NCBI GenBank assembly: GCA_024704765.1
Contig: JAKMXF010000310.1
Span: 931,999-995,998 of the forward strand
Length of the DNA: 64,000 nucleotides
Direction: 5' to 3'
Source of the DNA: Oopsacas minuta
Lineage: Eukaryota; Animalia; Porifera
Shown: in pieces, positions 23,401-56,400 of the stretch
Numbering within the stretch: position 1 is the stretch's first letter
Layout: the number at the start of each line of letters is the position of its first letter
Notes under the pieces: generated by a model
What the model saw: only the letters and a program-made list of their open reading frames with translations
What the model was told of the DNA's origin: nothing
The model's database searches: none
Made by a program: the position numbers and the translations under genes

Positions 23401-26400
23401 CAACCCTAAAGCAGGTGATGTGTAGTCGCCTTACGTCGTAAAGCGACCTAGCAAGCGAAGTGGAGTAGTAATCCAATAAAAACAATATATCAACAAGAGA
23501 AATCTTAAAAATAGTTTCAACTTTATGTCAATACCTTTATTCTTAAACAAATTTGATCAAATTAATAAAATATGCTCGGGTACAAGACAGTAAAAATAAT
23601 TAACAGTAACAAATCACGCCAATTCTTCATACATAAAATAATTAAATCAAACCTAATAGATCGAAGAAGCCCCTGATAAATGTCAATAGATGCTGTTCCA
23701 GAAAATTCAAGTCTGATATATCTACTAATATTGAAGTTTTGAGGATGTCTCAATCTGAGGCTAGAATTAACTTCAATAGAAGGGGAGAGAAGAGAGAAGG
23801 TAAGATATTCTTCAGTAGTGGATAATTCAGCGTTGAAATCTAACGGATCGGAGATATAGACAGTAGCTCCTTGGATACGAGGAGAAGAACCAATGTCAGC
23901 ATCAGAAATGCTTAAATTTGTACTTGCAACTGAGATTGGGTTACCATTTTCTAAATTGATAAGACATAAATAAGATCACAAAATCTATATTTTAACACAG
24001 AATTAATCTATATATATGTATACGTGGGGACGCTGCATTTTTCAGAATTTCGAGTTCTGACTTTGTCAGAATGATTTTTACTGTGCTCTGATTTGGGAGA
24101 ATCATTTTTGCATTTTGATTTAAAGCTAGGACGGGATCATGACGGGATATTTCTTGGATTAGCTATCAATTTGGTTATATGAGTAGTTAATCGGGGATTT
24201 GAATACGAACTAAATGGTGATCGGATGGTTTCTTCTATTTGTTATATCATGGTCTGGAGTGTGAGATATGATGTTTTAAATGAAGGAGAAAAAGAACACA
24301 GGGTTTTTAACTGTCATTAGTGTTGTTGGAACCGACTGTTGGTGTGTCTAAGTGCTTTTATCTATCGAGAAACTGGGATCAGGGATTTTTTCTAATTTTA
24401 CTCGGTTCTAACTGTGTTTCTTTGTTTTATAGAAAAACCATATTTTCTAAAACATTAAACTACTAAATAGTGTCGAAACTAAATGCAAAAACAATACTCC
24501 CAAATCGGAGCATAATAAACTCGATAATTACCATTTTTACAAAGTCAGAACTCGATAGAAACAATTCTAACAAACGCAGGCGCCCCGTGTATGTTTGTAT
24601 GCCAGAAGACCCCTATTGCTGATTTTTGGTATACAGGGGTACTTTAGGCCTGGCTGGGCCATTTCGAGTATAGGACGAAAATTCACACTATGAGGAGATT
24701 ATGACGTCATTGTCACTTTTTCGATTTTTGAAGAATCACAGGTACCGCTCAATGTGACAAATGTCCTGACGTCATGATTCTGACCAAATGCAAACTTATC
24801 ATGGGTTTATTACGTTATCATGTCTATACAAAAATTTCTTAGTACCCAAGGCACGAAATGCCGAGATTGCTAACCAAATGCCAAGTAGCAGCTCCAGTAT
24901 TACCACAGAAGGGTACTAAATGCAATTGGATAGACCATGTATAATACAAAATAAAATTTCCGCAAAAAACTATGCTATAGACACGTACGACCCAGACCAT
25001 CAAGAAATTTAGCTATTTATGACTTCAGTTGACTTGTGGCACTAAGCTGTCGCGCAGCGACCTAGCAAGCGAAGCGGGCTAGTGATTAAACAAATCTGAA
25101 AGAAATATAGATCATGTTTCTAATCTCCGCCAGTTAAAACTTTTATCCTATGGAAAAGTATATCTTAAGTTTTAACAATTTAAGGATATTTCGTAGCTTA
25201 GGGTCTACTATCCAAGATTAGCAGCCGCTGGAATATGAAAAGGAAAATATAAAAAATAAGCTTAAAGGAGTGAAAATACGAGTAAATATTTGAAATTGGT
25301 AGATATAGGGTTGATGATGCTATTATTATTATTATGCCATAATTTATCACCAGATAATTCTAGATTTTGAAGACACAACCACAAAAGTACGTAGCATTTT
25401 GTGAGATAAAGTAGTTAGTTATAATTTTTTGGGAAGTAGGTATACTTACCAATGAAATCCGTAAGAAAGGGTGAACTACTGCCAGAAATATTAAGAATAG
25501 GAATATTATCGTTTATATATTGAGGTATAAAGGATAGAGTAACAATGTTAGAAGAAAATGGGCCTGTTGAATCTTGTAAAATAAAGGAAATCGAACGATT
25601 ATTGTCCAATGGTTCAGAAGCTGTATCAGTGTACACAAGATTGGAGAACAGATCACGATAAATAGATGTCGGTGCGGTACCAGTAATCTGAATTGATTTG
25701 GTAGAACTACCGCTTACTGATAGTTCTGTCAGAGAAGAATCTAATGACAGATAGTCAAACACTTCATCACTGCTCTGAATAGATATAGCTGCAGAATCTA
25801 AGGTTGGGTTGGGGTCTGGATCTGTTATGTTAAATATAAATAGTTGAAAATTTAAGTTTTCCTGACCATCTATGAAAGGCAGGGACAGAGGAGCAATTGA
25901 GAGGATAGGGGGGTTGTTATTCACGTCCAACACATGAATCCTAATTGAAGCAGAGTCTAAGAAAGAGCCTGTAGGGTTCGTAACTATTGCAGTTAAGAAG
26001 TAGATCTGTTGTCGGTTAAAGTTTAGTGGAGTGACAATTGAAAGATGACCAGAAACTGAGTCAAGAGAGAAGTCAGAGACACCAAGAAGTTGAAATATAA
26101 GCTCTGAATTGATACCTGTATCCAAATCAGATGCTTGTAAAGTGAGTACAACAGAATTGATAGGCAGGTCCTCTCCAATCGTGATTGTATAATTGTTTGG
26201 ATCGAATACAGGGCTATTGTCATTGACATCGATAACTGTGATATTTATTTGAGTAAATGAGATAGAAGAATTAACTACAATGCTCGTGTCTAATACTGAT
26301 ACTACCAACGAATAGTAAGGTACAGTCTCAAAATCTAAATTAGAAGAGATAAATAATAGTCCGTTGTTATCAATGCTAAATGTTTGGTTAAAGGTGTCTT

Positions 26401-29400
26401 GTAGATAGAAATGAGGTATAGAAGTAGAGTGGGTATCACCATCCGTAAAGAGAATCTGTAAAAGTATTTCCCCAACACTTTCATCCTCAAATACCTCAAT
26501 GGGGGAGATTAATTGTATTGAAGGATGCTGGTCATTTATTGCGATTAGTTCTACATCAGTTGTGGCAGTGAAGAATCCAATGGTATTTGGATCATCAGAT
26601 ATTGAAAGAATAACCAACCTAGTGGAAAGGTCAATAAATTCTGGCAATTGATAAGAGTACCTCAGATTAAGGAGAATATATTGGAAGGAATCCAGAGAAA
26701 CATTTCCATAAAACATTACTTTAACATCGGAGAAATTAACCATATTGATACCGTCAGGAAGTGAGAATTCAGATGAAAACTGGATGATATCTCCTCCAAC
26801 ATCGAATAAATTGACAATTTCTATCAACAACTCCACATTAGAGGGAGGGAAAGAATCTTGATCTATTATCTTAATGTCTGAAGGGACTATGGGAACTGAA
26901 ATACCTTCCTCTATAAACTGTGTGAAGAATGTATCTGGAGAAATGTTTGGTGGAAAATCGTTAATTCCGCTAATTCTGATTAGTGTAGTGACGGTAGCCC
27001 CATTGAGATGTCCATCTTCAAAATCAAATGTTACCACTCTTGTATGTAGATCTGGTTCTGCTGCAATGTTAATATATTTCACAGCTAGCAAGATTGATAT
27101 AAAATCTAAATGAGAGCCAGGGCCAACAAGCAATAGAGAAGTATTACTCGAAATAATACTAATTGATTGAGGAAATTTCATTGGTGAGATAAACAAATAT
27201 TCTTCTGGTTGATCAATAGGATCCCTGATAGTAACTCTGAGTCTAGATACGGTCGTAGTACCTCTATCTGGATCCATAAATGAAATATCAGGGCCAACAA
27301 TTGCTATAGCATTACCATTTTCTATAAATGTAGTTTCAAAGTTTCTACTGATTGTATCGAATCCATCCAAATCTAACAAAGGAGGGAATTGATTGAGGAC
27401 TATAAGCTCGAGAGATATTGAACCTTGGGTAGAATGATCTCCAACATCTGATACTATTAGCGTAATTGTTCTAGGAGTTGGAATTGGGTTATTTATGGTA
27501 TTAACGTAGCTAACAGTTCGTAGTAAGCTAATATAATAACCAATAGATTCAATGCCCATGATAGTTAAGTATTTGCTTCCTAACTGATGAACAATAGAAA
27601 CGTCAGAATTACTAGAAGATTGTTCAATTGTGAGATATTCCAGGCACCCAGGATGACAAGTACCAACATCACATATACACATGTCAGGAAGAGTGCTATT
27701 GAATGATTCAGGAGAGGATAAAAGTAGTCGAGCAGAAGATAAATATTGAAAATTAATATCTTTGTCTAAAATTACTAGATTAGAGAAGATATCCAATGTC
27801 TCTGATCCTTCAGTGAAATTTACGATAGGAAAAATACCAAATAGCTCAGGTGGATTATCATCAGCGTCTTGAATAAAGATAAATACAACACCCGAAATAC
27901 TGTGGTTTAGGCTATCTCGTACTTCAAACAATGAAATAGCCAATATACCTGATTCAATATCTAGAAATTCAATAATAATGTGGCCGGTTGAGTTAATAGT
28001 AAAATTAGAACTGTACGGAATCTTCAAAGAAAATACCAAACGTCCCTCATCTATAGTGTCAACATCGAATACTGGGATAGTAGCAACAACAAAACCTGAA
28101 GGAGCAGCCTCTGATACATTGAATACAAATATATTAATATCATTGGGGAAGCGAGGAGTATTATCGTTGACGTCTAAGACAGTTACTGTGACCGAAGCAA
28201 AGTCAGTCAGCCCTACTGAATCAGATACAGATACATTCAGAAAGTGTAAGTCGATAGATTCTCTGTCAAGTTCAGCTGCACTCAGTTCTCCAGATAGAGA
28301 TAACGAGAATGGCCCTGTGCTAGAAATTATGGAGTAGATTAAATCTGAAGTTCTAACTCGAGATTTATTAGGACAAGTGCCATCTAAGTCATCAGCTGTT
28401 AAGACCAATATAACGCTCATGGGTTCATTCTCTGAGGCACTCGCAAAGAAGTTGGAAGTAGTAAATTGTGGAAATACATCCTCTAGGTTAGAAATAGAAA
28501 TAGTAACAGTAGTAGTAGAAGAAAGCTGTGGTAAACCATTATCTGTTGCAGAAATCAGCAAAATATATTCGCAAGTAAACTCATAATCAAGTGGGACTAT
28601 ATTATAAATTAATCCTAATTTGGGATGAATAGAAAATAAAGATTGAAAATTCAGCAACGCATAGGAGATTTCACTGTTACTGGTTGAATCCCTATCTGAA
28701 GCTGTAATGGTGATAATATTGCTACTAATAGTGTTCTCAGATAGTTCAGCAAAGAAATTAGGTTCACTAAATAATGGAAAATTATCATTCGTGTCGTTAA
28801 CATCAATGGTAACTATGACAGAACTATTCAATGAAGAATTCCCAAGATCATAAGCAATTACATCCAAACCGTATTGAGGGACGAACTCGTGATCAATGCT
28901 CCCCGAAACTGTGATACTACCAGACACAGCATCAATCAAGAATGGGACATTTTCTGGTGATGAAACAACATATCTAACTATCTTGTTAATACCAGCATCT
29001 AAATCAGTTGCTTGTAACGTAATTACACTGGTGTTGAGTGGAGAATTTTCAGGAACAAAAGCTGAATAAGATGATTGATTAAATGATGGGGGATTATCAT
29101 TTTCATCTAGAACAACTATCATGACCGTCACAAATCCGGTAAATCCTTGAGTACCATTGAATCCTCCAAAATCGATCGCTAATCCCACCAAATTGTGTAC
29201 AGCAACAGTTTCTCTATCTAACCCGTCAGGACCAGTGTAGATATCACCAGTATTTTCATCAATAGTGAATTGATCTGAACCCAATAACTGGTAGATAACA
29301 ACTGAATTCAGAGCAATATCATTGTCTGTAGCTTTGAGAGTGAGCACGTATGAGTTCGGAAGGTTTTCAGGAAAATTTACTGATACTAAGCTGGGCATGA

Positions 29401-32400
29401 AAATGGGACCATTGTCGTTGATGTCAAGAATAACCACACTGATTGTGATCTGACTCGATAAAGGAGGTGTTCCTTGGTCAGATATCGAGATTATTAGGTC
29501 ATAATCATCATTTTCTTCACGATCAAAAGTTGAATTAGTACTTATTTCTCCGCTATCGGAAATGGAAAATAAATTCAATCCGTCTCCACCAACGATCAGA
29601 AAGTGTATTTCAGCATTTTCCCCAGCATCATCATCTGTAGCAATAATAACGCCAATAGAAATTGGAGGAAGTTGTTCCTCTAATACAAAAAAGGTTAGAG
29701 AGATGTTAGGTTGGATGGTGGGAGAAAATTCGTTCTCATCAATTACAATAACTGTTACATTCGCTATTGAGGATCTCTGAGGTTGGCCTGAGTCAAATGC
29801 ATATACAAAAAAAGAGAAGAAGTCAATACTCTCTCTGTCAAAAGATATGTTTGAATAAATTTCCCCAGTTTCACTTGAAATGAAGAATTCATTGATAGTA
29901 AAATCCCCTGAACTAGTAAGAGCATAATATATTTCGCCATCAATCCCAGAATCTGAATCTTGAGCTGAAACATTTCCAATCAAAGTAGGAACGATTGAAT
30001 TCTCAGAGACATTGAATCGATAAAACACTCGTAAAAATACTGGTGACTGAGCATTGGTGAGGAAAATTTGTATTTGGGTGAAAACAGAAGGACTGAAGTC
30101 AGTGCCATCAAAAACATACAGCTCTAGGATTCTAATTGTTCCTCTAGGTTCGGATAACAGATTAGAGTATGTTAAACTCTGTAAAACTACATTTACATTC
30201 AAAATCCCGTCAAAATTAATGCTATATTGAACAACATTCTCAGAAGCTATAAAAATAGGATCAGGAACAGTGAGGTTCGTATGGCTAGTAAGGATTTCTT
30301 CCCCAGAAGAGAGTGTAGTATTCGATGTAATACGAATAAATAACGAAACAAAACGATTGTTATCATTGTCTATCACTGAAACATTACGAGATGTAATATA
30401 TATTGGAGGACCACCCTCTGTATAGCTAGTTGTGTAATTGTTCCCTGGTGCCGAAGTATCGAGATCGATCGAAGGGATATCGTTAACAGGAATAATAGTG
30501 ATTGATGTATTAGAGGCACTAGATTCTAATTGACCGTCGCTAACTGTAAAACAAATTGTTCTAGAAATAGGCGTTGGTTCTTCTGATGGGTTGTTATAGG
30601 TAACTGTTCGGAGTACTGTAACAAATTCTGAAATAGAAGTTTGAGAGAGGCTATAAGGAGAAATTGTTAAGACATATGTTGCGTTATCATAAGTAGAAAT
30701 TAATTGAGAATTTTCAGTTGAGACGGATAGATACTCTACCGGAGCTAAAGGATTCTTTAGTACTACCTGTGCCCAGGAGAGCGTAGGGCTATCTATATCT
30801 ATAATCATAAGGTTAGGGGATACAGCAAGTATTGATGTATGTGTATCTTCTATAAATGAAATTTCAAAGTTTAATCCTGGTAAATTCCCATTCAAGTCAA
30901 TGATTGGTCGATTGTTGATGGAATTATACAAAATAAAAATGGAAGCAGGGTTACTATCGTTTTTGCCATCATTCACAAAATATTGAACTTCTCTAATTCC
31001 ATCAGTAGAATTCCTTCCGATATTCTCATATCTTATCTGAGATATCAGATTTTCATAAATAATTAATGGTGCTACACCGGAAAGCAGCAGTACTCCAGTA
31101 ATTGAATTGAAGTCAGTTGTAACTTCTATCCCTTCAACTTCAACTGAGGGACCAATTAACAGTTCGTTTTCTCCATCTAATCTATTCCGAATTTCAACAC
31201 GAGCCCAACTGAGAGTATCATCATCATTATCTATTATTGATACTTCGTCAGACAATATTATAGCAGGGTCACCTTCTGAATAAGATATCTGAGTAACGCT
31301 GAGAGAGATCACAGGGATATCATTTATCGGTATAAGAGAAATTATACAGTATCTTGTCTGGGAGAAACGCTCTGAATTATCATCAACAAGAAATTCAATA
31401 GTCCTGGAACCGCCAGTTAATTCACCAGCAAGATTTTGATAAGTAACTGTTGATAAAATAAGAGCAAACTCAGGGATAGGGCTATTACCGCTGATTTTTA
31501 AGATAAAGTTTTCATAAGAATAAGATATGTGAGGAGATGTATTGGTTACGAGGAGTATTTCCTCAGATACTGGTTGTAGGGGATTTAGTATAGTTACACT
31601 AATAATGTAACTAAATGCAACGCTATCTCTGTCAGTTAGTGAAAAATTAGCAGAATCAACCAATGAAACAGGATTGCTTCCTTCAACAAAGATAGTTTGG
31701 AAGTTTCCATCAGCATTACCCAAGTTGAGGTCTGGTGGATAGTCATTCAATGGGACCAATGTAATAGTTACTATCACAGGGAGGCTATTAGACACTCCGT
31801 CAGATACTTGGTAAACTATTGTCTGTTCCAAGACTTGAGGTTCATCTATTGTATTGACATAATACAAAGAATTCATCAATTCTTCATATTCTAATTCAGA
31901 AGAAGTCCCAGAAATAGATAGGATACCATTGTTATACGAGAATAACACACTGAGATCAGAATCAGTATCACTAAACCATAGAGCTTCTCCGCATCCGATA
32001 CTACAGTATATAGTAGATGGAGAGACTCTGTTTGAAAAGAATAAAAAGTGAATAAACCCATTGAAATAATCTTGACGCTCATTAAAGTTACTAGGAGTTG
32101 GTGCAGCACCTAAATATAAACGGCCAGATTGATCTCTAATAGCTGAAATGGGAATTATGCTAACTAATTCTCCGTCAATTAATAAGCTGAAATACCAATT
32201 TGATGAATTATAATCAATGACAACAGCCAAATGATGCCAAGAGTCTATGAGTAAAGAGCAAACATTGGCTAGTACAATAAACTTATCCCCGTCAAAAGAA
32301 TTATACACAAAATGAAAATCTCCATTCACACAAACAAGAGTGATCACTGTATTAGTTGCACCTGAGTTTGGGGCTGCTTTAGATAAAATAGTACATGTTA

Positions 32401-35400
32401 AGTTATCAGTAAGAGGTTGATACCAAATCCACAAAGAAATTGTTAGTCCAGAATCTTCTGTACCTAATGAAATACTATCCTTAAACTCTGCGTATTGAGA
32501 TTGAGTTGATTCTAATGAAAGAGAATATCCAGAAAGAGAGGCCCCATTAAACAACACTAGCCCATCATTTTGTGTAGTAATTAATTCTACATTATCTATA
32601 CCACACCCTCGGGCTTTAAGAAGCCTGTCTTCATTCAAACACGGATAAGGGATAGTTTCTCTATTAGGTACAAACTCCTGGTTGTAAGAAGTATCTAGCA
32701 CTTGTAGAGATATATAAGCAGATGCAATTACATTGAGAGGAGGGAGATCTGAATCTTGAATATCAATAGAAGGATTAATGGCCAGGTTGAAATGTCCTTC
32801 AAAATAATTAAACATAGAATTGAAAGGGTCTATTTGAATGATCGGCATTTCATCATTTTCATTTATCACCATGATAAGAATATTAAGAGATGTCCTGAAG
32901 AATGGAGGATGAATATCCTGTGCAAATACCGTAATGTTGTGTTCCGAATTCAGCTCAAAGTCTAGCGGGAGCCGGGTAGCAATAACTCCATTATCTGAAA
33001 TATTGAAAGAATTGGAAACAGAACTGAGATATAGGGTGTATTCGTTGTTAGGAGGTAAATCGATGTCTGTAATATAAACAGCTGACACAAAAACACCAAT
33101 AGGAGCAGATTCAAGAATGCGGATAGTAGTAGACAAATTCGTTTGAATAATTGGAGCATTATCATTCTCATCTAGTATTTCTACTTCTACATTGCTAGTT
33201 GAGCTAAAACTGGGTACACCATTATCATTAACTTGAATTAAGAAGGAATAAGAAGCTGCAGATTCCCGATCTAACTCAGAAGATACATAGAGTGTTCCAA
33301 GATAGCTATTGACTATGAATGGAATTGTAGCATTAGTATTAGAGATAAGTGAGTAAGATAAGTTGGAATTTTCACCAATGTCAGGATCTGTTGTCGAGAA
33401 ATTATATACCAACATACCGATAGAAGTGTTTTCACTTAATCTTATGCGAATTATACCTTCTGGAAACATAGGGATGTTGTCATTCAGGTCAGTAACATCA
33501 ATTTTCACTTCAATCATATTCATGAGAGTAGGAACCCCTCCATCTGTAGCTGAGACATATAGTGTATATTCTATTGTACTCTCTCTATCTAGTACAGAAT
33601 TAGTATATATCTCTCCTGTGGTAGAGTTCAATCTGAAGAATAACGAGTATCCTGTGTTTATGAGATTAAAATTAATTAATGAATTGTTACCTAAATCTTG
33701 ATCAATTGCTTCCACTCTACCAATAAGCCTCGGGACAAGACCTATTAAACTAGTATTAGTATTGATTGGGGTGAAGTCCTCAGAAATAAAAAATAAATAT
33801 GGAGTATTTAAGAATGTTGGAGGGTTGTCATTAATGTCGGTGAGTATTATTAAAACGTTAACAGTTGAATTTCGAGAGTATTGATAAGGAAAGTGAGGAT
33901 TAAAAGCGGTAACCTGGAGAATAATTGCGCTAAATCTTTCTCTATCTAAATCAACATTAGAATTTACCGTTATCATGCCAAGTATAGAATCGATGGCAAA
34001 TGCAGATTGTCCTAGGGGAGGATGTACACCTGTAATCTGATACTCTACAATTCCATTCACACCAAGATCTACATCCGTAGCTAATACTGTAATTACAGGT
34101 GTAGCTATGTCGGAATGTTCCTCGATTTGAGTTTCATATGAGGAGCGATCGAAAACAGGAGAGTTGTCATTTTGATCCATAACACGAACATTGATTAAAG
34201 TAGTGTCCGAAAATCCTTGAAATGGACCATCATCATACACTTTTACTTGCAAAGAAAAGAATGAGTCCGTTTCGAAATCAATAGGCTGTGTGTTCCTAAG
34301 GGTACCCACAGATGTAATGCTGAAGGGTAATGAGGAAGAATTTGTGAGAGAGAAGAACATATCAGTTATTTGAACAGAATCATTATCTGTAGCAAAGAGC
34401 TGCAAGAGATTTGAAGGAGGAGCATTCTCAATTAGAGTTATGTTTATTTCTGTTTGGTTGAATGAAATTGCATTATCATTTATGTCCAATATTGAAATAT
34501 TTACTTGTGCAAAGTCAGCTAGAATGGTATCACCTTGATCAGTAACCATAACGAGGAATGAATACTCTATCACATCTTCATAATCAATGCTAGACTCAAG
34601 AAATATATAACCAGTTGTTGAATTTATTAAGAACGGAGTATCTCCTTCAATTGAGTAACTAAGTTTTGCATTAGTACCAGAATCTAGGTCAACAGCATCA
34701 ACAATTGTAACAAGAGATCCTTTGTCTAAATTTTCGAAGATGGAAGCAGTATACAAGCTCCTCGAAAATACTGGCGCATTGTCATTAACATCTAGGACAG
34801 AAATAATAACTTCTGCAGTTCCAATCATATGAGGTAATCCCATATCAATAGCCATGACTGTAAAATCGAATTCTTTTGTTTTCTCGAAGTCAATATCAAT
34901 ATTTGTATAGATTATCCCATCATCGTCAATTACGAAAGAATTGAAAACTCCCTGCAATATCAAAGTGATAGCAGAATTACCACCTAAATCTAAGTCCTGA
35001 GCTATGACTTGTAAAACACTAGTACCTATAGCAGTACCCTCGAGTACGTTTGAAGAGTAATTTGATTGCAAAAATGTGGGCGCATTATCATTGGTGTCAT
35101 TTACATTAATCAAAATTAAAGCTGAAGTTTCAAATATTCCATCGCTAGCCTGAATGGTAATCATATGAACAGCAAGTTTTTCAAAGTCGATCATCATAGC
35201 TAATGTAATCACCCCCGTTTCAGAGTTAATAGAGAAAAAATTTGATTCTGAAGAAGGAAGGATAGAAAAAGTTAGTGTTCCATTATTGTCAGACGTTTGA
35301 CAAGCAGCTATGAGCTCGGTGCGAATAATTCCTCCCACGAGACATTGATCAATATTACAAGTGTCAGCATCTGTGGCTAACACAGATGGAAGTAGGAGAG

Positions 35401-38400
35401 GGGTACCGATTGTAGCATTTTCTGGGAGAGTAGTTTGATAGAAAGGAAGCATAAAGGTTGGTTCATTATCATTATCATTTAATATCTGTATGTTAACAGG
35501 TACTACCATTCTATTCATACCACCATCTACTGCTGATACATTGACAGAGTATGTATTAACATTCTCAAAATCTATTGTGCCACTAAGCCATATTATCCCA
35601 CTAATAGGGCTGATCGAAAAGGGAACATGAGATGGTGTAATATAGTATTGTACCTCCCCAAAAGAACCACTGTCTCTATCACTAGCTTCCACTTGGAGTA
35701 TAGTCGTGTTTAATGGAGTATTTTCACATACAACTGCGGTGTAATTAGTCAGAGAAAATATAGGGATATTGTCATTTTCATCAGTGACATTTACTATCAA
35801 CTGAGCAGAAGAAGTCATAGATGGCCTCCCGTTGTCGACAGCAACAACTGTCAGGGTATATGAATTTCTGACCTCAAAATCTAGAATTGCATCATTCCTA
35901 ACAGTAACAACACCACTCGTATCAGTAATGGAGAAAGTACTAGAGTTATCAATAAGAGAGTAAATAAAACTGCCATAAATTCCAATATCATCATCACTAG
36001 CCACCACGATGCAATTTCCTAATATAACTCCTTCAGGAAATATGCAAAATATGGGATCTTGCAAAAACGTAGGCGCCATAGTATTCTGTATCAGATTAAT
36101 AGTGACTGAAGCATTATTGTCAGAGTCTGTAACTGAACAGGACGGGCCAGTTGCACCTATTACTAACATATAAGAAATAAAAGGATCCAAGGAATCCTCA
36201 TCAGCAACTAAATACAATATCCCTGTATCAGGATTAATCTCAAATATAGTAACATTTGTCAAATAAGGGAATACCTGAAGTATCTCGAATCTAATCGAAC
36301 TTGTACCATTGGGCGATTCATCAGGATCAATTGCTAGTATTGTAATCAGAGATGCTCCAGAAAGTGTTTGGAGAGGGAGTGTGTAGTTGTAAGTATCAGG
36401 TAAGAAGGAAGGACAGTTATCATTCTGATCAGTAATGTTAACGAAAAGAGAAGTTGTAGAGGTGAACAATCCATCTGTGACTTCTAATGTCAATAAATAG
36501 TACGATATTAATTCTCTATCAATTACAATTGTAGAAGAAGTATAAACATCCCCGGTAGTGTTGTTTATTATGAAAGGGCATTGTTCTGGACAATTCTTTA
36601 TGCTATAGATTAGAGTAAAAATTGAATTTTGTGAATCGACATCAGTTGCCTCAGCCGTAAATACAAATAAATTTAACATATTTTCTTCAATGTTAAAATC
36701 ATAAGGAGTATTAACGAATAACGGAAGGTTGTCATTTACTGATTGTATAGTAACTTGAGATATAGCAGAGGAACTCCAAGCAAAGCCGTCAAATACTGAG
36801 AGGTAAAATACCCGAGTGGTTGAAATCGGCTCCAAGGCAGGGTCAAAGAAAGTTATGTTAGAAATTAAAGACGAAACAGTAGAGAGAGATGTGAAAGGTG
36901 AAAAATATATACTACAATGAGGCGATGAATCGTTACAATTTAACTTCGGGTAAATTGAAATCAAAGATAAATCACGAATATCTCCATATTGTATTCGAAG
37001 CTCAGATATATATTTACTATCTGGGTCTATTATGACAGGTTGTAAGCTAATCATTACAGCTGGTTGATTTTCAACAAATGTTGTCGTATAGTCGTTAGAA
37101 GAAGTTGATGAATCAAGATCTAGGATAGGTGCATCATTTACAAGCGAAATATAAATGTAAATAAAAGATAGTTCACTGATCAATAATCCATCAGAGGCAG
37201 ATACAGATATAACTCGTATAAGATCTTTAGGCTCTTCTTCAGAATTAGAATAAGTTAAAGTTCGAAGTGTGTCTATAAATAGGTCAGGCGTTGAGGAAAA
37301 TGAGGAGATAGTAATGCGATGAGGAGATTGAGTTACCAACAGAGAGGAGGAAGGAGAGAGTGATATGAATTCAGATTCATTCTGAGGATTAGTCAGAGTG
37401 ATGATTACTTCAGTCAACTCAACATTATCTGCATCTAATATTGAAATATTGAAGGGTAAGATAGATATATTACCAGAAGATTCACGATAGGTAACAAAGT
37501 AATCTCTTCCTGGCTCTAGGCCATTCAGATCAACGACAGGAGCATCATTAATTGGAGTTAGAGTAATAGTAACCAAGTCAGCTATGCTAGTGGAGTTGAG
37601 ATCATCTGTAACATAAATTTCAACATCTCGAGCTCCTGCTGTAGGATCACCTGAAGTTATGTTGTGTGCATACAGTAGATTTCTTAAAAGAGACTGATAC
37701 GTAGATAAGGTAGCTATACCACTGATAGATATCTGATGTTTGTTTATTTGCAGAAGGGCTAGCCCTGGAAACGGATTACTTAACATAAGTACTTCACTTT
37801 CTCCGTCAGGAGGGGTTATTGAGAAGCGAATAAGGGCTCGCGAAAGAAATAAGCTATCAACATCACTCAATATGAGATTAGGGGTAATAAGAACACTACG
37901 ATTTGATTGGTTTTCTAAGTAGTTGATTATTCCACCATTCACTTGAACCTAGAACATATAATTATGATGTGCTAATAATCACAAAAAAACTGAACATATG
38001 TACAACCAAAATTATCTACATATGTATATTATTAAATCTCAATTGTTGTTTGTTTGCCAGTTGTCAAGGGATGGATGTACGGTATGGGATTATGAATTGA
38101 ATTTCGCAATTCCGAGATGTCGCATGACTACCTTAGTATAGGAAATTAACGCGATATTTCTCCAAACCGCGAAATTTCCTTAATATCATGCATTATCATA
38201 TTTAGCACTCAGAGAATTAAAAGTTTAACGAACGCACTGACTAAATAACTGTAATGAATCCGACAATAAAGTAGAATATAACACTCAAATTGAACAATTT
38301 TATGTAACAGAAATTTAAGTAAGATATGGTAATCCTCATTGATTAGCTTCTAGTTTATTTTTGCACCTAATTCCAACTGCTAAATATGGGGAAAAACAAG

Positions 38401-41400
38401 AATATAACAATAAAATCTGCTTTTCAAATTGAAGGACAGAGATGTTGGTAGGAAACAAAAAGCTATTGCTGCTAAAATTAATATCCCCCAGTAAGAGTTT
38501 CACGTACTGTTAAACGTCATCCCATTTCACCATTGAAGAAAACATTCTAATCAAACGCATTGATATTAAGCAATCAATAGTTTGTCTGGAGTTGTAGAAC
38601 AATTAGGCCTGGTTTGCAAGAAGAATTTGATCTGAATTCCCTTTTTGACTCAAAAAAAGGAATATGCAATTTTTGGCCACCACTGATGTGGGAGAAGGGC
38701 AGGGGTTGCCCAACTCGTTTTAATCGTGGGCCAATATCAGATCCCAAAGTATTTATATGTGCTAGCTATATATTAATGCTACCTATACTTAACTTAAGAA
38801 CTGTTCATATTGCAAATTTAGAAATAATAAATATCTTACTCACTAATTATTGATATTAAATATACACTCAGTATCTAATTGAATATAGTTCAGGATAAGT
38901 TAGGTAGAAATATACGAATTGAATGGTGTAAAAGTTTTAGTGACCTACATTTGTGCGGGCCTTATTTTGGGCACCTCTCATGTAGGTTTTGATCAATGAT
39001 TTATCGATGTGTGATTTGCACTATAATAATAAGTAAGATAGTAACAGGAAAATTTCAAATTACAGTCTGTGCCGACGTAATTTCACTAAATAAATTATAG
39101 CGAATTTTGTCCTAGTGTTACATATTCAAAGTCAAAAATATATCTCCCAAACAATCAAGAAAGGACCATATATTCGGAGCGTGAGTTTCGAAACAGCTTC
39201 AAATACAGATAAATACTTTTCTTTTAATATCTACCTGTTTATACTTATTTAATAAATTTTCCCATATTTATTTCTTCAGATTGACTCGAGCCCTTGATCT
39301 TCAAGAATATTTAAAATTGATAGAATTTCATCTTGTGGTAATAAGGGTAATACTATTATACAGGGGAGCCATTTCATAAAATCATAAATCGTACTATAGA
39401 TACTTGACAGTTTTGCCTTCTAACTCTATTCCAAAGTAGTTTACAACTAGTGAGATAAGCATCCAGTACGGTGAATATGAGGTAATTCACTTGAAATGCA
39501 TTTCTCGGCGCAGATTCAAAATCACTAACTGCAACATTAGGTTTAAAATCGGGTATAATTTCAGCCACCACATCAAGGACTCTGATTAGTTGATCATTAA
39601 ACATGAATTGTAGGAATACCGGAATAGAATGCTCATACTAAATGGAAAATATAGGAAATTTTCTGATGAAGTTTGAAAGGTACGAAATGTTCCATTGAAA
39701 CAAATTCGCTTGCAAGACTCTGCTAATAGTGCATATTATCTGACATAATTGTGGCAACTCTATTATCTACACAGTAGCCTTAAGCATATATTAGTGACGA
39801 CTGCCAACTAGAAGTTTCAACTATTTGTTTACTTCATATTCATAAAACAATAATAAATTTACATATGAGAAAAGCGAAATTAGGATTCAGCGTACGTGAT
39901 TACCCATGATTCCAATAATTCATGGTAATCAGGTAAGCTTTGTCCACTTTATTTTTACTATATATTAATAATACAACAAATTAATAGACAAATAATTAAT
40001 TCAAAAGTGTGAAAGTCAGATTGAGGATATTCAATATATTTAGTCAAAATTATATTTAATTTAATTATTTTATGCCTTACTAAACACGGGCACGATAGGA
40101 TGTGAGGTTATTTTTGCTAATTAAATTGGGCTAATTTGGCAAATCTATATTATTAAAAGCGATTAATCTACTTATCTATATAGTATAAGCTTGTAAGCCC
40201 CGAATTGGTTGAAGAAACTGAAAGACCTCCAGGCCTGATTCTTGGGATACAGCGGTATTTTGGCCTGACTCATCATGGAACTATTAAGTCATGAAATTCT
40301 TAATACTCGAGGGACCAAGTGCCTAGATGGGCCGCATGGATTTGTCCGAATTTTGGAGTATGCATCTGTCCGACTGAAGTAAGGCCTGAATGAAGGAAAC
40401 AGGAAGAAACTAGTAGCAGGTAAAAGCCTTGGGCTCAGTATAAAGTGAGAATGAAAGCCAGAACCTGTACGGCGAGAATACTAGTAACTAATGACAGTAA
40501 ATCCTATCCTGTGATTTGTAGTGATGGAAATCTCCTTAATCAGGGCCATATTTACAATATTTGCAGTCTATCTAGTTAAATGCGGCACTAGAAACGATCA
40601 AATCACAACTAAATTTGAATAGAAATCATGGGAAGTTAATTCCTCCAGGAAAAATGCGAAAAAAAATCCCAATCCCCAATTTTCAGCCGAAATAATCAAT
40701 AATACCAGAATATACAAATTCATACTTCAAAATTCGGACAAATGCATACTCCAAAATTTCGGACAAATGAATACTACAATATTCGGACCAATGCAGCTCT
40801 CCCGCCCAGAATACTAACCAATAGCCAAATAATATAAAATTTAGCAAATAAAGGGGTGCTGCATTTGTTCGAATTTAGATGTTATCATTAGTGAAAATTT
40901 GTTGAACTAACTGTCGTGAGTTCGAATCGTATTTCAGAGTACTACCATTAGTTCGAATTTAATACTACTTTGAAATAAAATCAATTTATTGGCACTCGCT
41001 CTAAGTCTCTATTTTGGATGCACAACAATACTTAGGTTTCCTTTATAAGTTATATGCAGACTAGCTTCATAGAAACTATGAAACCTATTGTCACTCCATT
41101 GAGTGGAAATACCTATAAATTATTGAATTGACTTTAAGGATTTAGGTACGAATGGAGTATAAAGCAGAAGAATTCAAACGCATTACAAGGAGAGTTTATA
41201 AAACTTCAGATGGTCATAAATATACATCCAGTCCAAAATCATGGAAAAATATATTCATCTGAGATGTGCCTTATTTAAGTCAGCATGATGTAGAGCAACA
41301 AGTAAGTTAAACCGTGAATCGAATTTGAACGATATTGGACGTCTAAGTCAAGGGAGAGAAATTACACGGGCCAGGAAAAAGAAGGATATCAGAAATGATC

Positions 41401-44400
41401 AAATTTCAAAAGAAATGTGATGATTTCCGCAAAATTTCACCTCGAGGCACTAAGTTGTCGCGCAGCGACATACCAAGCGAAGTGCACTAGTATAGATTAA
41501 TTGCGTTTTAATAGTATAGATTGTTCATGAAGAATATTCATATAAGACGAACTTTACTAATACGTACTAACCTTTGTTTTTCGAACTTGTCCGAGCCAGG
41601 CCCAAAATACGCCCTTCCCTGTATGCCAAAAATCAGCCCAAATGCACGATCACAATAATGTTCCAACCTATATCTAGTTTGTAGAAGTAAGTTTGGATTA
41701 GGTAGGCCTGAGGTGACCATTAGAAAACTTATTAAAGTATTACGGTATAATGGACTACTGCCACATATAATTTGAAAGTAATCAGCAGTAAGGATGGCAT
41801 TACAGTAGTCCACTAGAGATAAAAGCATGAACTAATTTCTCCATTATATTATTGTCGAGGTATTTATATAAGGTTCCAATCCGGCTAAGATATAATAAGG
41901 CTGTCTTACAAATATTGCTTATATTTGATTTCATTGATAGGTGTTTATCAAAGTTGACTCCTAGATTTCTGGTAACATTAACTGGATGCAAGACAGAAGA
42001 ACAGAATGAGGTAGAGACGGATTGATTTCATCACGATATTTAGAAGTGAAATACACAATATTAGATTTATTAGGGTTACAAACGAGTGTATTTGCATAAA
42101 ACCACTTAAATAAGTCAGCCAAACAAGCTTCCAAACGGATCTTAGTTTCCTCTTTTCGTGTAGGATTCAGAGATATATACAATTGTGTATCATCAGCATA
42201 AAACAATACTGAAAGTCCCTGGGCTTGAATAATATCCTAAACAGGTGAGATATACAAATTGAATAATAACGGACTCAGAACTGATCCTTGAGGAACACCC
42301 CATTTAACATTTTGTGGATCAGATAGAAAACAATATTAATTAGCACACTGCTGCCCTCAGTAAAGAACGATCTTAACTATTTAAGAATCTTACCAACACA
42401 ACCGAATCTGAACTGCAGGCGCTCTAGAAGAATCTCATGGTCAACGGTGTCAAAAGTCAAGGATAGCTCTAAAAGGACCAACACAGCATTTAGTTCAAAT
42501 TTTTTGAGTAACCTCTAACTTCCACTAAACTAAGAACTGTAAAATCACTTAAACACATAAGACGCGTATTCACTGAAAGTTTTGGATGATCGAATATTTC
42601 AGGAAAATTAATTAATAATAAATAATATGCAGCTTTCATGTTTATTACAAGGCAGGGGCGATACAGGATATAATCTCAGGGGGTCAAGTTGCGAGCGAAG
42701 CGAGATATCCCTAAAGGGGGTTTGGTGGACAAGCCCCCAAAAAATGTTTACATGTTATACGCTGAAATAACGAACTATAGCTATTTCTACCACCTATGGA
42801 AGATATAAGTCAATTAGACGCGAACTTGACTCTCTATCTGTTTCAAAATAGACAGTTAGCTACTAGAATGATAATCATTCAAAAATATATAAATATTGTA
42901 GTTATAAATTAATCATAACAGATTTAACAGTTGCAAAATATAATAGAATAACTCCAGTTGTGATATCAATCTGGAAAATCAAAAACTCTCAATTCACTAT
43001 TAAATCTCAGGGGGGTCATAGCCCCCCAGCCCCTGTTACAAGGGCTGTTCATTAAATTATATGACTAAATTTCATAAATAGAACTAAACCAAAACGTATA
43101 AATAATCCTTGCCAACTTGGGCGTAGAATTTCTGTAAAATTTTAAAATTCTGGGAGGGCGACGATTTGGTATTTTGATATATATATATATATAGACATAC
43201 AATTGTTGGTTTACTAGTACCAAATTAAGATATGCTGAAAGTGATTCACTAAGTGTAAATTCCATTTCATTATTTATATCAATTAGAAAATCTCAGTGAA
43301 GCATCAGAACTCTCTCGCCTGTAAACTAAACTTATGATACAATTGCAATTCAGGCCAATTCTTCTTGTACAACAAATTCATTATTTTAGTCTAGATCCAT
43401 ATACAGGGTGTCTAATAATTACTGGCCTATCCATTGTTAACATTTGTCGAACTAATTAGATACAGTAGTATTAGTGTATTTCTACAAGATCCTGTTAATG
43501 TTTTTATCTACTCATATACTATCTTTTGCGGCTATGACGAAATTTTTCTGGCTACATTTTTGTGTATATGTAGCAACTTTGAGATTTTACTCTTATTTCT
43601 GTTATTTTGGGGTAGTGTTGATGGATTCCGACATCCGATATAGAGCAATTGGTTTGTTAGAAGCGGGTACAAGCCAGAAAGAAGTAGCATGTAGGTTTGG
43701 AAAGGGAGTTCGAACAATCAGACGTTGGTGGTTTCGATTCAAACAAAATTCTAGTCTCACACATCGAAAAGGTGCTGGACGGCCTAAAAAAATGAATATG
43801 GCGGCCAAATGGTGATCGTGAAATCGTTGGGTAAAAGACATCACTCAACTAGGAAATTGTCGACTAAACTGAAGTTAAAGGGGTACCAGATTTCAAAGAG
43901 CACTGTACACAATTATTTACGGAATCAATTAGCTGTTAGGGCATTTAAAAGGCCGAAAAAACCCAAGCTGACTCAAAATCAGATGATAAACAGACTCAAA
44001 TTCTGTCAAAAAGTGAAAGATTCGACAGTCAATGATTGGAAGAAAGTTATGTGGTCAGATGAATCACTATTTGAATTATTCCATTCGAGTAACACGCAAA
44101 ATGATCGTATTTGGGCCCACAGTACTCAGGATGTTCTCCCTAGAGAGACAATAAAGAATCCACCCAAAATAATGGTCTGGGGCATGATGAGCTATCGAGG
44201 ATTATCAGACTTGCACTTTATTCCACCAAAACAAATAGTCAATGCGCTATACTATGTTTCAGATATTTTGGAAGGTACATGCCTAAATACACTCAAGAGA
44301 AGAAGAATAAACGGGCCTGTTTATTCTAGAAAATTGGTATTAAAAAGGTCGGAGGCACATTTCATGCAAGATGGTGCTCCTGCTCACAGGGCCATAGTTG

Positions 44401-47400
44401 CACAAGAATGGTGCAAAAAGCAATTTTCAAGCTTTTGGACTAAGGATGAGTGGCCTGGTAACTCACCAGATTTAAACCCAATACAGAATATATGGGGTAT
44501 ATTGAAACAATCCATTGACGAAATGAAGCAACCAAAGAACGTTGAACAACTGAAAAATCAACTCGAATTGCATGGAAAAATATTCAACCCCAATGGCTAG
44601 AGAATATTGTGGCAGGCATGCCAGAAAGGATCAATAAATGTTTACGACTTAATGGAGATTATATAGGAAAGTAAGCGTACATTATGAGGTCTTATATTTC
44701 ATAATATATTTTAGAATTGAATAGGCCAATAATTTCTGGACACCCTGTATAATAATTAACTGTCACAAGAATACTAAAACTTTAAGATTTCAAAAACCAT
44801 TGATAGACAAGTACAACTGGATAAGGAGATGTTCGGGTAATCGAAGCTAGACCGATCAGAGCTGCAAATGGGTCATTGACCAATGGGTCAATAGGTCAGA
44901 TGGTCCAATTTTTCCAGATGGGTCGATGGGTCATGATTGATGCGTCATGACCCACCAGTACTTATATGCATTTAGTACATTTGGTAAAATACATCGGAGT
45001 TATATGCGATTTGCTACACATTAATGTTTAAAAGGTGTTAGTATTATCAACAATTATGTTTTGTCACAGTAATATTATTGTCAAGAATTTAATAATGCTG
45101 AAAATTGAATTCCAATTGATTTTCAACACAGTTCTAGCAGTGGCGTAGGGAGGGGGGTCCTAGGACCACGTCAATCTGTCAGACTGATTATTTTTTCACT
45201 AGCAATAAAACAAAGGACTACTCTTGTTTCAAAAGTACCTCAAAAACATTCTACACAGGTCCTACTTAATAGTATTTGATTTCTTTCTGTTAAGTATCAT
45301 GTTTATTATTCTATCCTATCTTTTGCCACAACATCTTCACGCCGCATCAATTTTATTTTATAAATTGAATTATACTGTTGAATAAACATAAAATAGGCCA
45401 ATCGATAGCCTACTAGGTTTATGGAAATGTTACTTAGTGTGTTTTGTTTGTTAATGGGTAGAGATTACGCAATAGAGTTTTCCATACCGCAAATCGGTCT
45501 TTTGTCAAAGTAATTTTTAATAATCGCTGTGGTGATGGCCCCAGACCACCTTATTGACTCCCTTCGCTCGCTTAGGACCCCCAATCCAAAAACCAGGCTA
45601 CGCCTATGAATTCTAGATATTCTAACCCAAGGAATATGAATCTTTTAGTATTAAACTGGGTTGTGTATCAAAAGTTAATAGGTCAAGATGGGTCACGTGG
45701 GTCATGGGTCACTTTGTATGACCCATTTGCACCTCTGAGACCGTTCTAGAAATATCTCTGGAATGTTGACATGCTGACAGCATTTGTACAGATTTGGATG
45801 AGGGTTGTAGAAAACAGTGGGGGTGAATGTATTAGCCGCACCCCAAGAATAAAACCGGGGCGGCGCACCACCCCCAGCACCCAAGAATTATACACCTATG
45901 CTTGTCAAATGATTATACATATATTGCTAGTGAATATATATAGAGGGGGAAACCATATGGTCTAATTAAGTTAATCAATTGTACTGGCTAGATCTCATAA
46001 ATATTTCTAGAAAATCATTCATTCAAAATTAACAATATTTCACGAGTTTATTGACTAAAAATATGTAACCCAAAATTAGTATTGTAAGAACTACAAATAA
46101 TTTTGTTACTGTTGGTTACTAATATTCCGAAAGGGGCAATTCTCTTGTCATCATCTTGTGTATCTCCCAGTATGTGAAGTAGATCTCCATCTAGAGAGAA
46201 TACTTTGATATTTCTANNNNNNNNNNNNNNNNNNNNNNNNNNNNNNNNNNNNNNNNNNNNNNNNNNNNNNNNNNNNNNNNNNNNNNNNNNNNNNNNNNNN
46301 NNNNNNNNNNNNNNNNNNNNNNNNNNNNNNNNNNNNNNNNNNAAGAAAATAGTATATGCTCTCATATCACAACTGTGTGTTTCATACCTATAGCACAATT
46401 CTCTTTTCTGTATAGAATTGTAAATACAAGTTACGCTATGCTGATGTGATTAGATTGTAAATATATAGAAAACTACACCTCTCTCTTTTCTGTTGAAAAT
46501 AATATCTTATTTCTGAATAGAGTATCTTAATATACTCTCTCCTTATACTATACTCTATATAATATAATTGAGACTAGTGCTCTGCTCTTTCGATCTGTAA
46601 TATGTTAGTTTATAAAGGGGTTATATATTAAAAATAAGGACAGAGAATTAAGCCTTATATACTATAAAATATCATTTCACTAATATATAATTCTGTGCTA
46701 TGCAACGCCCGTACTACATCTTACCTGCCTTCATTGCTTTTCTCTTGTGATTTGTATCTTCTAATAACTCACAACACTCCCCACCTAAAACTATACACAT
46801 TCGTGTTTACAGTCTTCTTTTCCTATCCCACTGAATAGAATTTATTTAGGGTAACCAATTCCCTATTGATTTGTTTTGATATAAATAATCACATACAAAA
46901 ATAGTAACTGAGAAAGAGATTTGGAATAAAACACTATTTAACTGACCAAAAAATCTTCTCCACTCATAGTTTTCCCTCCCGTATACTTTAATATTTAATT
47001 ATAATCTATTAAAACGTATACTACTATAACAGAGGAAAAAAATATATTAGTTAGATTATAACCTTGTTTTAATGAAACAATATATGAACCCTCTCGAACA
47101 TTCCTCCACCCACCTATGAAAATTGGCCGTATGTTCCAATCTTTTGGAGAGAACAAATTATTTTATATTATTATCTGACATAATATATATAAAATATCTA
47201 CCTCTTAATTAGCTGTTAAATTAAACAGCTACTTTGCTTTGTTTGTTGTGCATCGTACCTAAACAGCACCTCTGTCTCCCTCACTGTAGCCTGCAGCTCT
47301 CTCATCTTATCGTCCATCTCCTCAATCATCCTTTCTCTCATGGAGTGGAGCAAGTTCTCTTTCATCTGGGATTGTAGATTTGCTTTCGATTCTTGAGCTG

Positions 47401-53400: not shown

Positions 53401-56400
53401 AGTGTTTATGAAAATGAAGATCATCTTTTGGTTACTTAAACCAACATTTAACAAGTAGAAGGTATTTGATAAAAAGGATGAGTTTAAGTTTTGAGAGTTT
53501 CTGAAAAAATCGATAAACATAAAAAAACTACCATATATGGGCATGAACTTTGATTGCATCATCGTTGTTAAAATCACTTGGAAAGCAGGTTCAAAAGTAT
53601 TCTAGATGTCTCCGCCGTATGTGGAAACCTATTTACAGTTGAATTTGTAATGATAGCTGTAATTCTTCATGATCAAACAGAATATAATCAATGGTCTGGA
53701 TATTATTTTGGCAATTCTTTGCTTGGCTAGCCGTGTATATAGTAGGCCATGGGTAGCCACTTATCCAAGGGTAAATTCCATTCCAAACAAAGCGTGGAGT
53801 GCCTCAAAATTACCAAGGACAACATCCAAGCCATAATCAGACTCTTTTCAATTGTCGAATGACGGTCTCAGATACGTAAATGAAATTATTCCTAGAGTCT
53901 TGTAAAGCTGGAATACCATGTTACAAAAGATGAAAATATTTCAATGTATTACCTTAGGAGCGTCATTGGTAAGTATTATTGTAATATCTATCAACATAGC
54001 ATCAGAGTCAGAATTCCCATCATTTACTGTGATTGTGATCATTCTTGATTCGGATGAAGGTTCTTCAGCAACATTCCAATATGTAAGAGTCTGAATAATT
54101 GACTCAAATTCCAAAATCGTTTGAGGTTTATTAGCCTAGAGGAGTATAAATTTAGTATAGTGGGGCTGAGACCAATATTCGCCCGTTTGGATGACTAAGC
54201 ATTTCACACCTTAAACGCAATATCTGATGAAAAAATTTAGGTAATTGAGAGTAAAAGATTTGATTAATTAGTTAGAATGGAATATATTCAATTTTCATGA
54301 GTTTCATAACTCTATTAACAATTTAAAGAATAAAATTAGAATAAAATATTAATAAATAACGTGGTACGTAGTAGTACATTGAAAAGACTAAACGAATATT
54401 CGAATAATTGGTATATCGTTTAAGCCCAAAAATCTTGTATCAGAAATAAATTGTAGTATAAATAGTACTCAGAGTAGAGATGTAATTAAATTGCTGTGAT
54501 AATCTAGAAATTGAGCTAATGACGAACGACCAGAAAATATGAAGTTAAAGAAATGTCAGAATGAAAATTTCTGATTTTCGGCTTTTCAGTTAACCGAATA
54601 CTGCCGAGAAAAAGTGTGATTGTATTACATCAAAAAGGTGGAAAAATCTCGCTTTCGGTAGTGGGAATTGGTTAAAACGAAGTTGTACAAATTTAGTTAC
54701 GAACTTAAAATTTCAGCCCTAATTGGTGAATGTTGAGATTTTCACCCAAGCTTTAGTAATAGGTATGACAATAAAGAAAGCGTTTAATAGACTTTCTGTA
54801 AGAGAATACTATACTAAGTAATAGGCAAACAATCACATAAATTACCAGATATATACTAATACTTACTAAGCCTACAGATTAAGTAAGTCCAAAGCAATGA
54901 AATAACAAAATGTCCAGCCGACCCCTGAGCTGCACTACCAGTATGATAGTGCAGCTCAGGTTATGTATTTTGTTCTTTTCAAGGGGGAACACCCCGCCTG
55001 ACCACCTCGTGTAGATGCAGCAATGCACTAGACCCCGACTGATTTAGGGCTCCTGGTTCTGATAAATATTTCAGGATATTCAAATAATTCGTCCCCTACT
55101 AAACTTCATGTTATATCCTCAAATCTTATTGATAAAATTCTAAATAATTATGCTGCGATTACCCCCGGTCTAACTTTTGAAACGAAACCTCTAGGATCAA
55201 ACTGAAATATTTGCAAAAAGGTGTGAAAATATGATAAATCACATGATAAATCTGTGAAATTGTAACTTTCAGACTCTGAAACCCTCAAAATCGGACTCTA
55301 CGCACCCAATTACCCCTGACAACATTTTCAAATATAATCTCTAGCTTGCTGTATATTTACATAGAAATATATGAAAATATGATTAATCAACAAAACGGTG
55401 TGAAATATTCACTTCAGAAAACTTCATACCCGAGGTGCAATCTCCGACACATATGTACATGTGAATCGGACTGCTATATCGCGAACGGACGGACGTAAGG
55501 ACGTCGCACATGCCATTAGAGCATCTCTCTCTATAGAGGCTGGACTAAAAATCTTCAAATAAACTCACAGAAACAAAAATAAATGTAGAATTGACTTGCG
55601 TTAAATTTATAAGATTAATGTTAGGAGGGTTAAGTTGTATTCTGTCAAATTGAGATTGTGGGGCTACGATCTTAATCTGTGCAGATGTAATATGTGTACT
55701 GTCTACATCATTGATCCTAACATCAGAATATTGAAAGATTGACAGACGGGTATGAATATCAGATTCTGTATAATTTAACAGCAAAATTGAAGGAAATAAT
55801 ACTGGGGGATCATTGACAGCAAATACTTCAATATTCAATATACTAGAATTGAAGGAAAAACTACTAGTGTAAATGTTTTTAGATGGAATACCATACGACT
55901 GATCCCAGAGGAGAAATTCAACTGTTGTAGTACCAAACTGATGTAGATAAGGAGAAAACCTGTAAGAATAGATCAAAAGATTAATTAGATGAATACTACT
56001 ACGGTTGAAGAATTTAATAAACTAAATATTCAGTTAATTAGGTACATACACACAAGGTATTCAAGAATCAAATAACTTATATACAGTGGAGTCTCCCAAA
56101 ACGGACACTCCGAGAAGCGGACAATTCTCTACAACGGACAGAAGCCATGTCACCAACGTGTCCGTTATTCGGAGACCCCACTGCATATAGCTCAGCTATT
56201 CTATAGTACAGTTTGTGTGTATTAGCTTTCTATCTTCGAGGAAAGGTAATGTTTTATTATTAATGAATGTCACCTTTTCGAATGAGGGTGGGGTTTTTGT
56301 ATTGCAAAAAAAACTGTAATAAATTATAGTTCAGCTATATATAAGGAATCCCTTCAAGAATATATTAGGAAATTACGTCATAATAATACTTTGCACTGAT

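Follow-up and report, generated by a model that had tools for sequence, protein, structure and literature searches.

The window analysed here is a stretch of 64,000 nucleotides from the sponge Oopsacas minuta (assembly GCA_024704765.1, contig JAKMXF010000310.1, forward-strand positions 931,999 to 995,998), which contains on its minus strand a giant cadherin gene with a composite module in mid-protein. The module consists of a laminin G (LamG) domain nested in a repeat of another class, the B repeat, one half of which precedes the LamG while the other follows it. Together with its neighbours, the module recalls the extracellular part of the calsyntenins, and the composite module and calsyntenin are likely of common descent, with a rough probability of 0.55. 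The parts of the module and their surroundings are listed below, with residues numbered in amino acids (aa) of the big exon so that aa 1 falls at window position 37942.

25450..37948, minus strand: single coding exon of the giant cadherin gene, 12.5 kb, about 4,166 codons
32846..33505, minus strand: two extracellular cadherin (EC) repeats, about EC11 to EC12, adjoining the module upstream (Pfam Cadherin, two stretches, E 1.7e-28)
32693..32845, minus strand: N half of the interrupted B repeat, aa 1700-1750, five predicted strands
32558..32692, minus strand: N-side stalk, a linker with a short helix, cysteines at aa 1768 and 1780, motif P-Y-x-C ... G-C-G
32021..32557, minus strand: LamG or concanavalin-like jelly roll of the Laminin_G_3 type, aa 1796-1974
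31988..32020, minus strand: C-side stalk, x-C-x-I-G-C-G, cysteines at aa 1980 and 1984
31736..31987, minus strand: C half of the interrupted B repeat, aa 1986-2069, closing with L-N-D-Y-P-P
30041..31735, minus strand: four uninterrupted B repeats after the module, aa 2070-2634, each scoring 118-144 bits with the B profile

The nesting is visible when both flanks of the LamG are placed on a profile of the intact repeat. B repeats are about 135 aa long and end in x-N-D-x-P. The eleven from the exon align cleanly and gave one profile hidden Markov model (HMM), and a second was built from 138 repeats of 14 related proteins. With aa 1700-2075 (window 31718-32845) as the module query, aa 1984-2069 on the C side align to positions 55-138 of the B HMM with an E of 3e-18, and aa 1708-1747 on the N side align to positions 12-49, weakly, at 2.5 and 6.9 bits with the two profiles. 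All 11 orthologous modules are split in the same way, at about 10-60 and about 55-138, and their N halves reach 6.5-17.1 bits. The original prediction had placed the LamG inside a B repeat, after cadherins and before further B repeats, and this anatomy proved right, both halves being colinear with the profile of intact repeats. The split repeat is thus confirmed, as an observation far beyond chance. Every sequence string quoted in support of the prediction was recovered, all of them in one minus-strand open frame:

aa 1711, minus strand: FNYFEG, string of the original prediction, in frame
aa 1767, minus strand: PCLNEDRLLKARGCG, likewise
aa 1833, minus strand: LTISLWIW, likewise
aa 1902, minus strand: WHHLAVVID, likewise
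aa 1959, minus strand: YFNGFIH, likewise
aa 1978, minus strand: IYCSIGCGEAL, likewise
aa 2008, minus strand: LSISGTSS, likewise
aa 2064, minus strand: PLNDYPP, the string that closes the repeat, in frame

The inserted domain has the jelly-roll fold of a LamG. Scanned alone, the module matches Laminin_G_3 at 42 bits (cutoff 27.6, E 1.3e-10) and Laminin_G_2 with an E of 1.7e-5, and a Laminin_G_3 match is present in 11 of 11 segments from close orthologues and in 32 of the 34 segments of the wider family. Its two internal cysteines, aa 1871 and 1895, are nearly invariant. Toxin_R_bind_N is also matched by LamGs of the family, in two cases, and the calsyntenin clusters likewise match both Laminin_G_3 and Toxin_R_bind_N. 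Four further cysteines flank the LamG, at module positions 69, 81, 281 and 285 (aa 1768, 1780, 1980 and 1984). The 11 orthologues keep all four without exception; among the 34 modules of the wider family three are invariant and C281 nearly so, and G286 of the module is invariant in the 34 sequences.

The same protein offers a LamG-less counterpart of the module, a B repeat with a small cysteine knot in the place of the LamG:

27380..27847, minus strand: B repeat with a LamG-less four-cysteine knot, C-x-C-x5-C-x3-C-x-E-Y-L, aa 3366-3521

In the alignment, the knot is an 18-residue insert with four cysteines at the very point where the module is broken, and it is followed by C-x3-C-x-E-x-L, the motif that also closes the LamG insert. 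The knot is conserved in 18 family members; 17 of them also have a module, with the knot lying 1,550-1,740 aa downstream of it. An AlphaFold2 model of the knot repeat (mean predicted local distance difference test score, pLDDT, of 86) places the knot at residues 51-75, in a loop between strands five and six. The corresponding model of the module (pLDDT 70, predicted template modelling score 0.74) shows in order five strands, a helix at 71-80, the jelly roll at 96-271, a helix at 276-282 and six strands with one helix. The strands assigned to its N half by DSSP, E2-5, 11-15, 18-22, 25-28 and 40-48, match the first five strands of the knot repeat, and the strand order of the knot repeat is that of the two module halves combined. 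With the same strand order and the same loop, the module amounts to a B repeat of the knot type whose beta5-beta6 loop is occupied by a LamG, and the knot repeat is its 'empty' counterpart. A fold search of the Protein Data Bank (PDB) with the knot-repeat model returned no close match and only generic sandwiches of the Ig or cadherin type, the best being the Ig-like domain of B4GALNT1 at a template modelling score (TM) of 0.48.

In outline, a B repeat, an Ig- or cadherin-like sandwich of about 135 aa with one helix, is opened at its beta5-beta6 loop. The opened loop holds a stalk of two short helices and four invariant cysteines, which carries the jelly roll of the Laminin_G_3 type. The four flanking cysteines would pair into two disulfides stapling the stalk, the LamG might jut sideways from a rod of cadherin and B repeats, possibly stiffened by calcium, and the projecting LamG could act as a binding head for a protein or glycan ligand.

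The module is found well beyond the window. A word-index search with the module as region retrieved ten giant proteins of 4,100-5,200 aa with a complete module at 30-66% identity, together with many bacterial-type adhesins that match its C half only. An exhaustive profile search with module positions 1-290 over 1.84 billion representatives gave 3,155 matches. Among the matches listed, down to 68 bits, about 28 span the whole query and most others are multi-LamG proteins. With local profiles, a LamG directly followed by the C half of a B repeat was recorded in about 40 cluster representatives and in none of the bacterial-type proteins retrieved. In one protein of 6,723 aa (P0041), five modules begin at aa 1522, 2668, 3808, 4940 and 6092, with a period of about 1,140 aa; exactly two Cadherin domains precede each module, and four B repeats follow each of the first four. 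This tandem layout shows that the unit behaves as a cassette. Three module-bearing giants, P0072, P0120 and P0134 (modules at aa 1338, 1335 and 3834), form a more divergent subgroup, in which the C-side stalk reads C-F-x-E-C-G-E-x-L as against C-x-I-G-C-G elsewhere.

In domain order, the module and its neighbours do resemble calsyntenin, and this likeness is supported by a structure ranking and by the register of the Pfam family CLSTN_C. The unit EC-EC-B(LamG)-B follows the order of the calsyntenin ectodomain and most likely shares ancestry with it, as a cassette open to duplication or excision. In the ESM Atlas, the four top neighbours of the module model (pLDDT 70) are clusters of calsyntenin-3, an arthropod calsyntenin, calsyntenin-1 and calsyntenin-2, with 243-252 residues aligned over module positions 49-376 and a TM by query of 0.50-0.52. 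Rows containing a LamG only align 204-229 residues, 15-50 fewer than the calsyntenin rows. Language-model features point the same way, as calsyntenin clusters have 159-172 of 256 features in common with the module and other LamG_3 clusters 122-133.

The CLSTN_C profile adds a positional argument. It matches 11 of the 34 segments made of a module and two B repeats (best E 1.1e-5) and is the second most frequent family there. Mapped to the B profile, the ten CLSTN_C matches with recovered coordinates, some of them in segments of close orthologues, fall into two registers, with ends agreeing within about 2 positions. In the first register (eight matches), CLSTN_C positions equal B positions plus 114 or 115, which puts a whole B repeat at CLSTN_C 115-253. 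In the second (two matches), they equal B positions minus 54, so that CLSTN_C 1-84 corresponds to B 55-138. The second register begins where the sponge repeat resumes after its LamG, at B position 55, and the CLSTN_C profile as a whole reads as the C half of a B repeat followed by a full one. The only CLSTN_C match in the window falls on the C half of the knot repeat, covering profile positions 10-101 from the C-x-E-Y-L motif onwards (E 0.032, 13.6 bits), and there, too, CLSTN_C position 1 corresponds to B position 55. Of the vertebrate (chordate) calsyntenin clusters, 98-100% carry Ig_CLSTN, a newer Pfam family that was also recorded for orthologues of the sponge protein.

Several observations weigh against common descent. 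CLSTN_C was found on the C-side flank, the cysteine pair with the C half, in 0 of the 34 modules, and it gave no match to the window's module scanned alone. All sponge matches, at 12-25 bits, stay under the Pfam cutoff of 27 bits; the best score of the window lies likewise below the gathering score of 27 that would mark a calsyntenin, and it falls on a different repeat from the module. The acidic kinesin-binding tail that also marks calsyntenins, and its motifs, were not seen in the sponge protein, whose tail was not examined. Repeat proteins of the bacterial VCBS and DUF4347 types exceed the same cutoff, at 31-42 bits, on profile parts that the sponge repeats also match:

P0013:682-728, P0016:2360-2426 and P0031:646-697: bacterial-type CLSTN_C matches, on profile positions 9-60 and 166-229

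These matches make the CLSTN_C likeness generic to the repeat class and not specific to the sponge family. For Ig_CLSTN the scores are weak or faint, and they come from ordinary B repeats, which are N-terminal in P0010 and follow the LamG in P0004. On the structural side, a TM of 0.50-0.52 to the calsyntenin clusters is borderline, and the N half of the module model reaches a pLDDT of 52-61 only. By Atlas features, the part outside the LamG retrieved on its own only a cluster of 97-aa CLSTN_C fragments, at 0.78, which is a lead at most. The comparison with calsyntenin was an indirect one, through Pfam profiles and ESM Atlas clusters. CLSTN_C presumably starts directly after the calsyntenin LamG, and we take calsyntenins to have matching cysteine pairs and an N half; neither assumption was used as evidence.

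The original prediction of a calsyntenin-like module therefore held in part. Its domain order stood, and the Atlas ranking and CLSTN_C register speak for it; the match to calsyntenin outside the LamG did not materialise on the 34 C-side flanks, stayed below the cutoff elsewhere and was shared with bacterial-type proteins. Some searches are neutral on this point. The PDB yielded no calsyntenin ectodomain by sequence, profile or fold, only generic LamG jelly rolls. Word-index searches with the whole open reading frame, the profile and a 1,601-aa piece retrieved no calsyntenin sequences, which has no bearing on kinship. The exhaustive profile search likewise returned orthologues, bacterial-type adhesins and multi-LamG proteins and no calsyntenin among the matches listed (at least 68 bits), a score beyond the reach of a single-LamG protein, so that this blank says nothing on kinship.

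How the likeness arose can be weighed against these data. One objection would deny that the flanks make up a B repeat and would have the LamG stand free between the cadherin run and the B run. It could appeal to the low score of the N half in the window, but the C half begins at position 55 of the profile instead of position 1, at a highly significant E, the N half stops near position 50 in every one of the 11 orthologues, scoring up to 17 bits, and the two halves together have as many strands as the intact knot repeat. We regard such a misreading as highly improbable. A more serious rival is convergence, in which the beta5-beta6 loop would be permissive and LamG_3 domains would have been inserted into it independently in giant cadherins and in calsyntenin; the resemblance would then lie in domain types common to both, with no composite ancestor behind it. 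The knot without LamG at the same loop marks a site that tolerates inserts, the C-side flank of the module is without CLSTN_C signal, bacterial-type repeats come at least as close to the B-like parts of CLSTN_C as sponge repeats do, and LamG_3 is very common, as the thousands of profile matches testify. Against convergence stand the shared order of EC-EC, module and B, a CLSTN_C profile that starts at the very B position where the sponge repeat is broken, and structural and feature rankings led by calsyntenins and not by other LamG_3 proteins. Convergence is a possible explanation, if somewhat unlikely.

Common descent, the reading that we prefer, leaves two directions to consider. The calsyntenin ectodomain (EC-EC, a LamG nested in an Ig-like repeat and one further repeat of that kind) might be an independent copy of a cassette that giant cadherins already contained, and were multiplying, before the split between sponges and other animals, a proposal that we put forward tentatively and with considerable doubt. 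Conversely, a small calsyntenin-like EC-EC-B(LamG)-B cassette might be the older form, the giants having been built from it by tandem duplication and fusion. The five near-identical cassettes of P0041 show that the unit amplifies as a block, as this scenario would have it, whereas the protein of the window has a single module alongside about 21 ECs and 11 full B repeats; an origin of the giants in this manner appears improbable. The tandem cassettes themselves fit an excision of calsyntenin from a giant, the direction suggested in the original prediction, and the opposite direction equally well.

The host exon lies in an open frame of the minus strand that runs from stop to stop over 25418-37948, and its bounds are given by an acceptor AG at 37949-37950 and a donor GTAAGT from 25449. 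It encodes in order three B repeats, about 12 ECs, the module, four B repeats, about seven ECs, three B repeats, two ECs and at least one more B repeat, the interrupted repeat coming in addition to the 11 full ones. Pfam recognises 19 Cadherin stretches (E 6e-250) and one Laminin_G_3, at aa 1814-1972. A further exon is found upstream:

53953..54135, minus strand: upstream exon encoding a B-repeat end, ...T-N-D-A-P-K, spliced to the big exon across an intron of about 16 kb

Here the evidence of transcription is one spliced contig of sequencing run X2, although none of the runs is recorded as RNA. The contig is unbroken over 32100-37950 and its loose end maps uniquely to 53955, where a donor GTAATA follows the upstream exon. 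The joint 53955/37950 preserves the reading frame and coincides with a B-repeat boundary. The giant cadherin gene is probably transcribed, and the contig would place the N half, together with the beginning of the LamG, in a continuous mature RNA.

Other observations concern the surroundings of this exon. The intron (37951-53952) contains assembly gaps, with runs of N near 46.1-46.4 kb and 50.0-50.8 kb, and an open frame resembling a reverse transcriptase with a Y-A-D-D box at about 41964-42236 in a minus frame. Just upstream of the exon, the 32 bases at 38025-38056 are covered by hundreds of short stacked contigs from all four runs, with a summed depth of 11,000-43,000 against about 50-150 alongside, and are probably a high-copy repeat. 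Between 32341 and 37787, the window and the contigs differ at ten single bases; eight of these differences are common to X2 and X3 (seven also to X4) and absent from X1, one occurs in X1 and X4, and one in X4 only. They are probably allelic variants, because all runs come from one sample.

Should the calsyntenin LamG prove to be nested as well, its cassette, at times in tandem, in the giant cadherins of an early-branching animal would give the family a concrete and testable origin, and a disulfide-stapled side head on a rod would provide a structural frame for the disputed ligand binding of calsyntenins. Were calsyntenin a copy of such an old cassette, a family of neuronal adhesion and transport would be traceable to one unit of an ancient giant adhesin. 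On another level, the analysis shows that units of the bacterial-type cadherin-like class form part of Pfam CLSTN_C and that this family cross-matches non-animal proteins.

Among known systems, the jelly rolls of LamG_3, TSPN, clostridial toxin Hc-N and pentraxin proteins resemble the inserted domain in fold only, with 8-17% identity, and none of them is nested. Bacterial-type repeats (Big_9, Cadherin_3/4/5, VCBS, 'tandem-95' and DUF4347 adhesins) share the C half of the B repeat at 30-40% identity in dozens of proteins; they differ in having no LamG directly before this half in the proteins retrieved, and the sponge B repeats stay under the cutoffs of the corresponding Pfam families. Giants of the FAT, Dachsous and CELSR type have similarly long EC arrays, and Cadherin_FAT4_N and Cadherin_CELSR2_9th match the window protein partially in Pfam, whereas their LamGs are free-standing near the membrane, neither accompanied by B repeats nor nested in a repeat. 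In the papers searched we found no account of the nested layout, and calsyntenins are drawn there with no host repeat (PMC9064300). A calsyntenin is a type I protein, about 950-1,000 aa long, and the usual depiction gives it a pair of cadherins and a single LNS domain, together with a transmembrane segment and a short tail (PMC9064300). The calsyntenins or alcadeins (CLSTN1-3, CASY-1, Cals) share with the sponge protein the succession of cadherins, a LamG of the Laminin_G_3 type and B-like Ig_CLSTN and CLSTN_C regions; they differ from it in size and layout, as the sponge module sits midway along an exon of more than 4,100 aa and is preceded by about 12 ECs.

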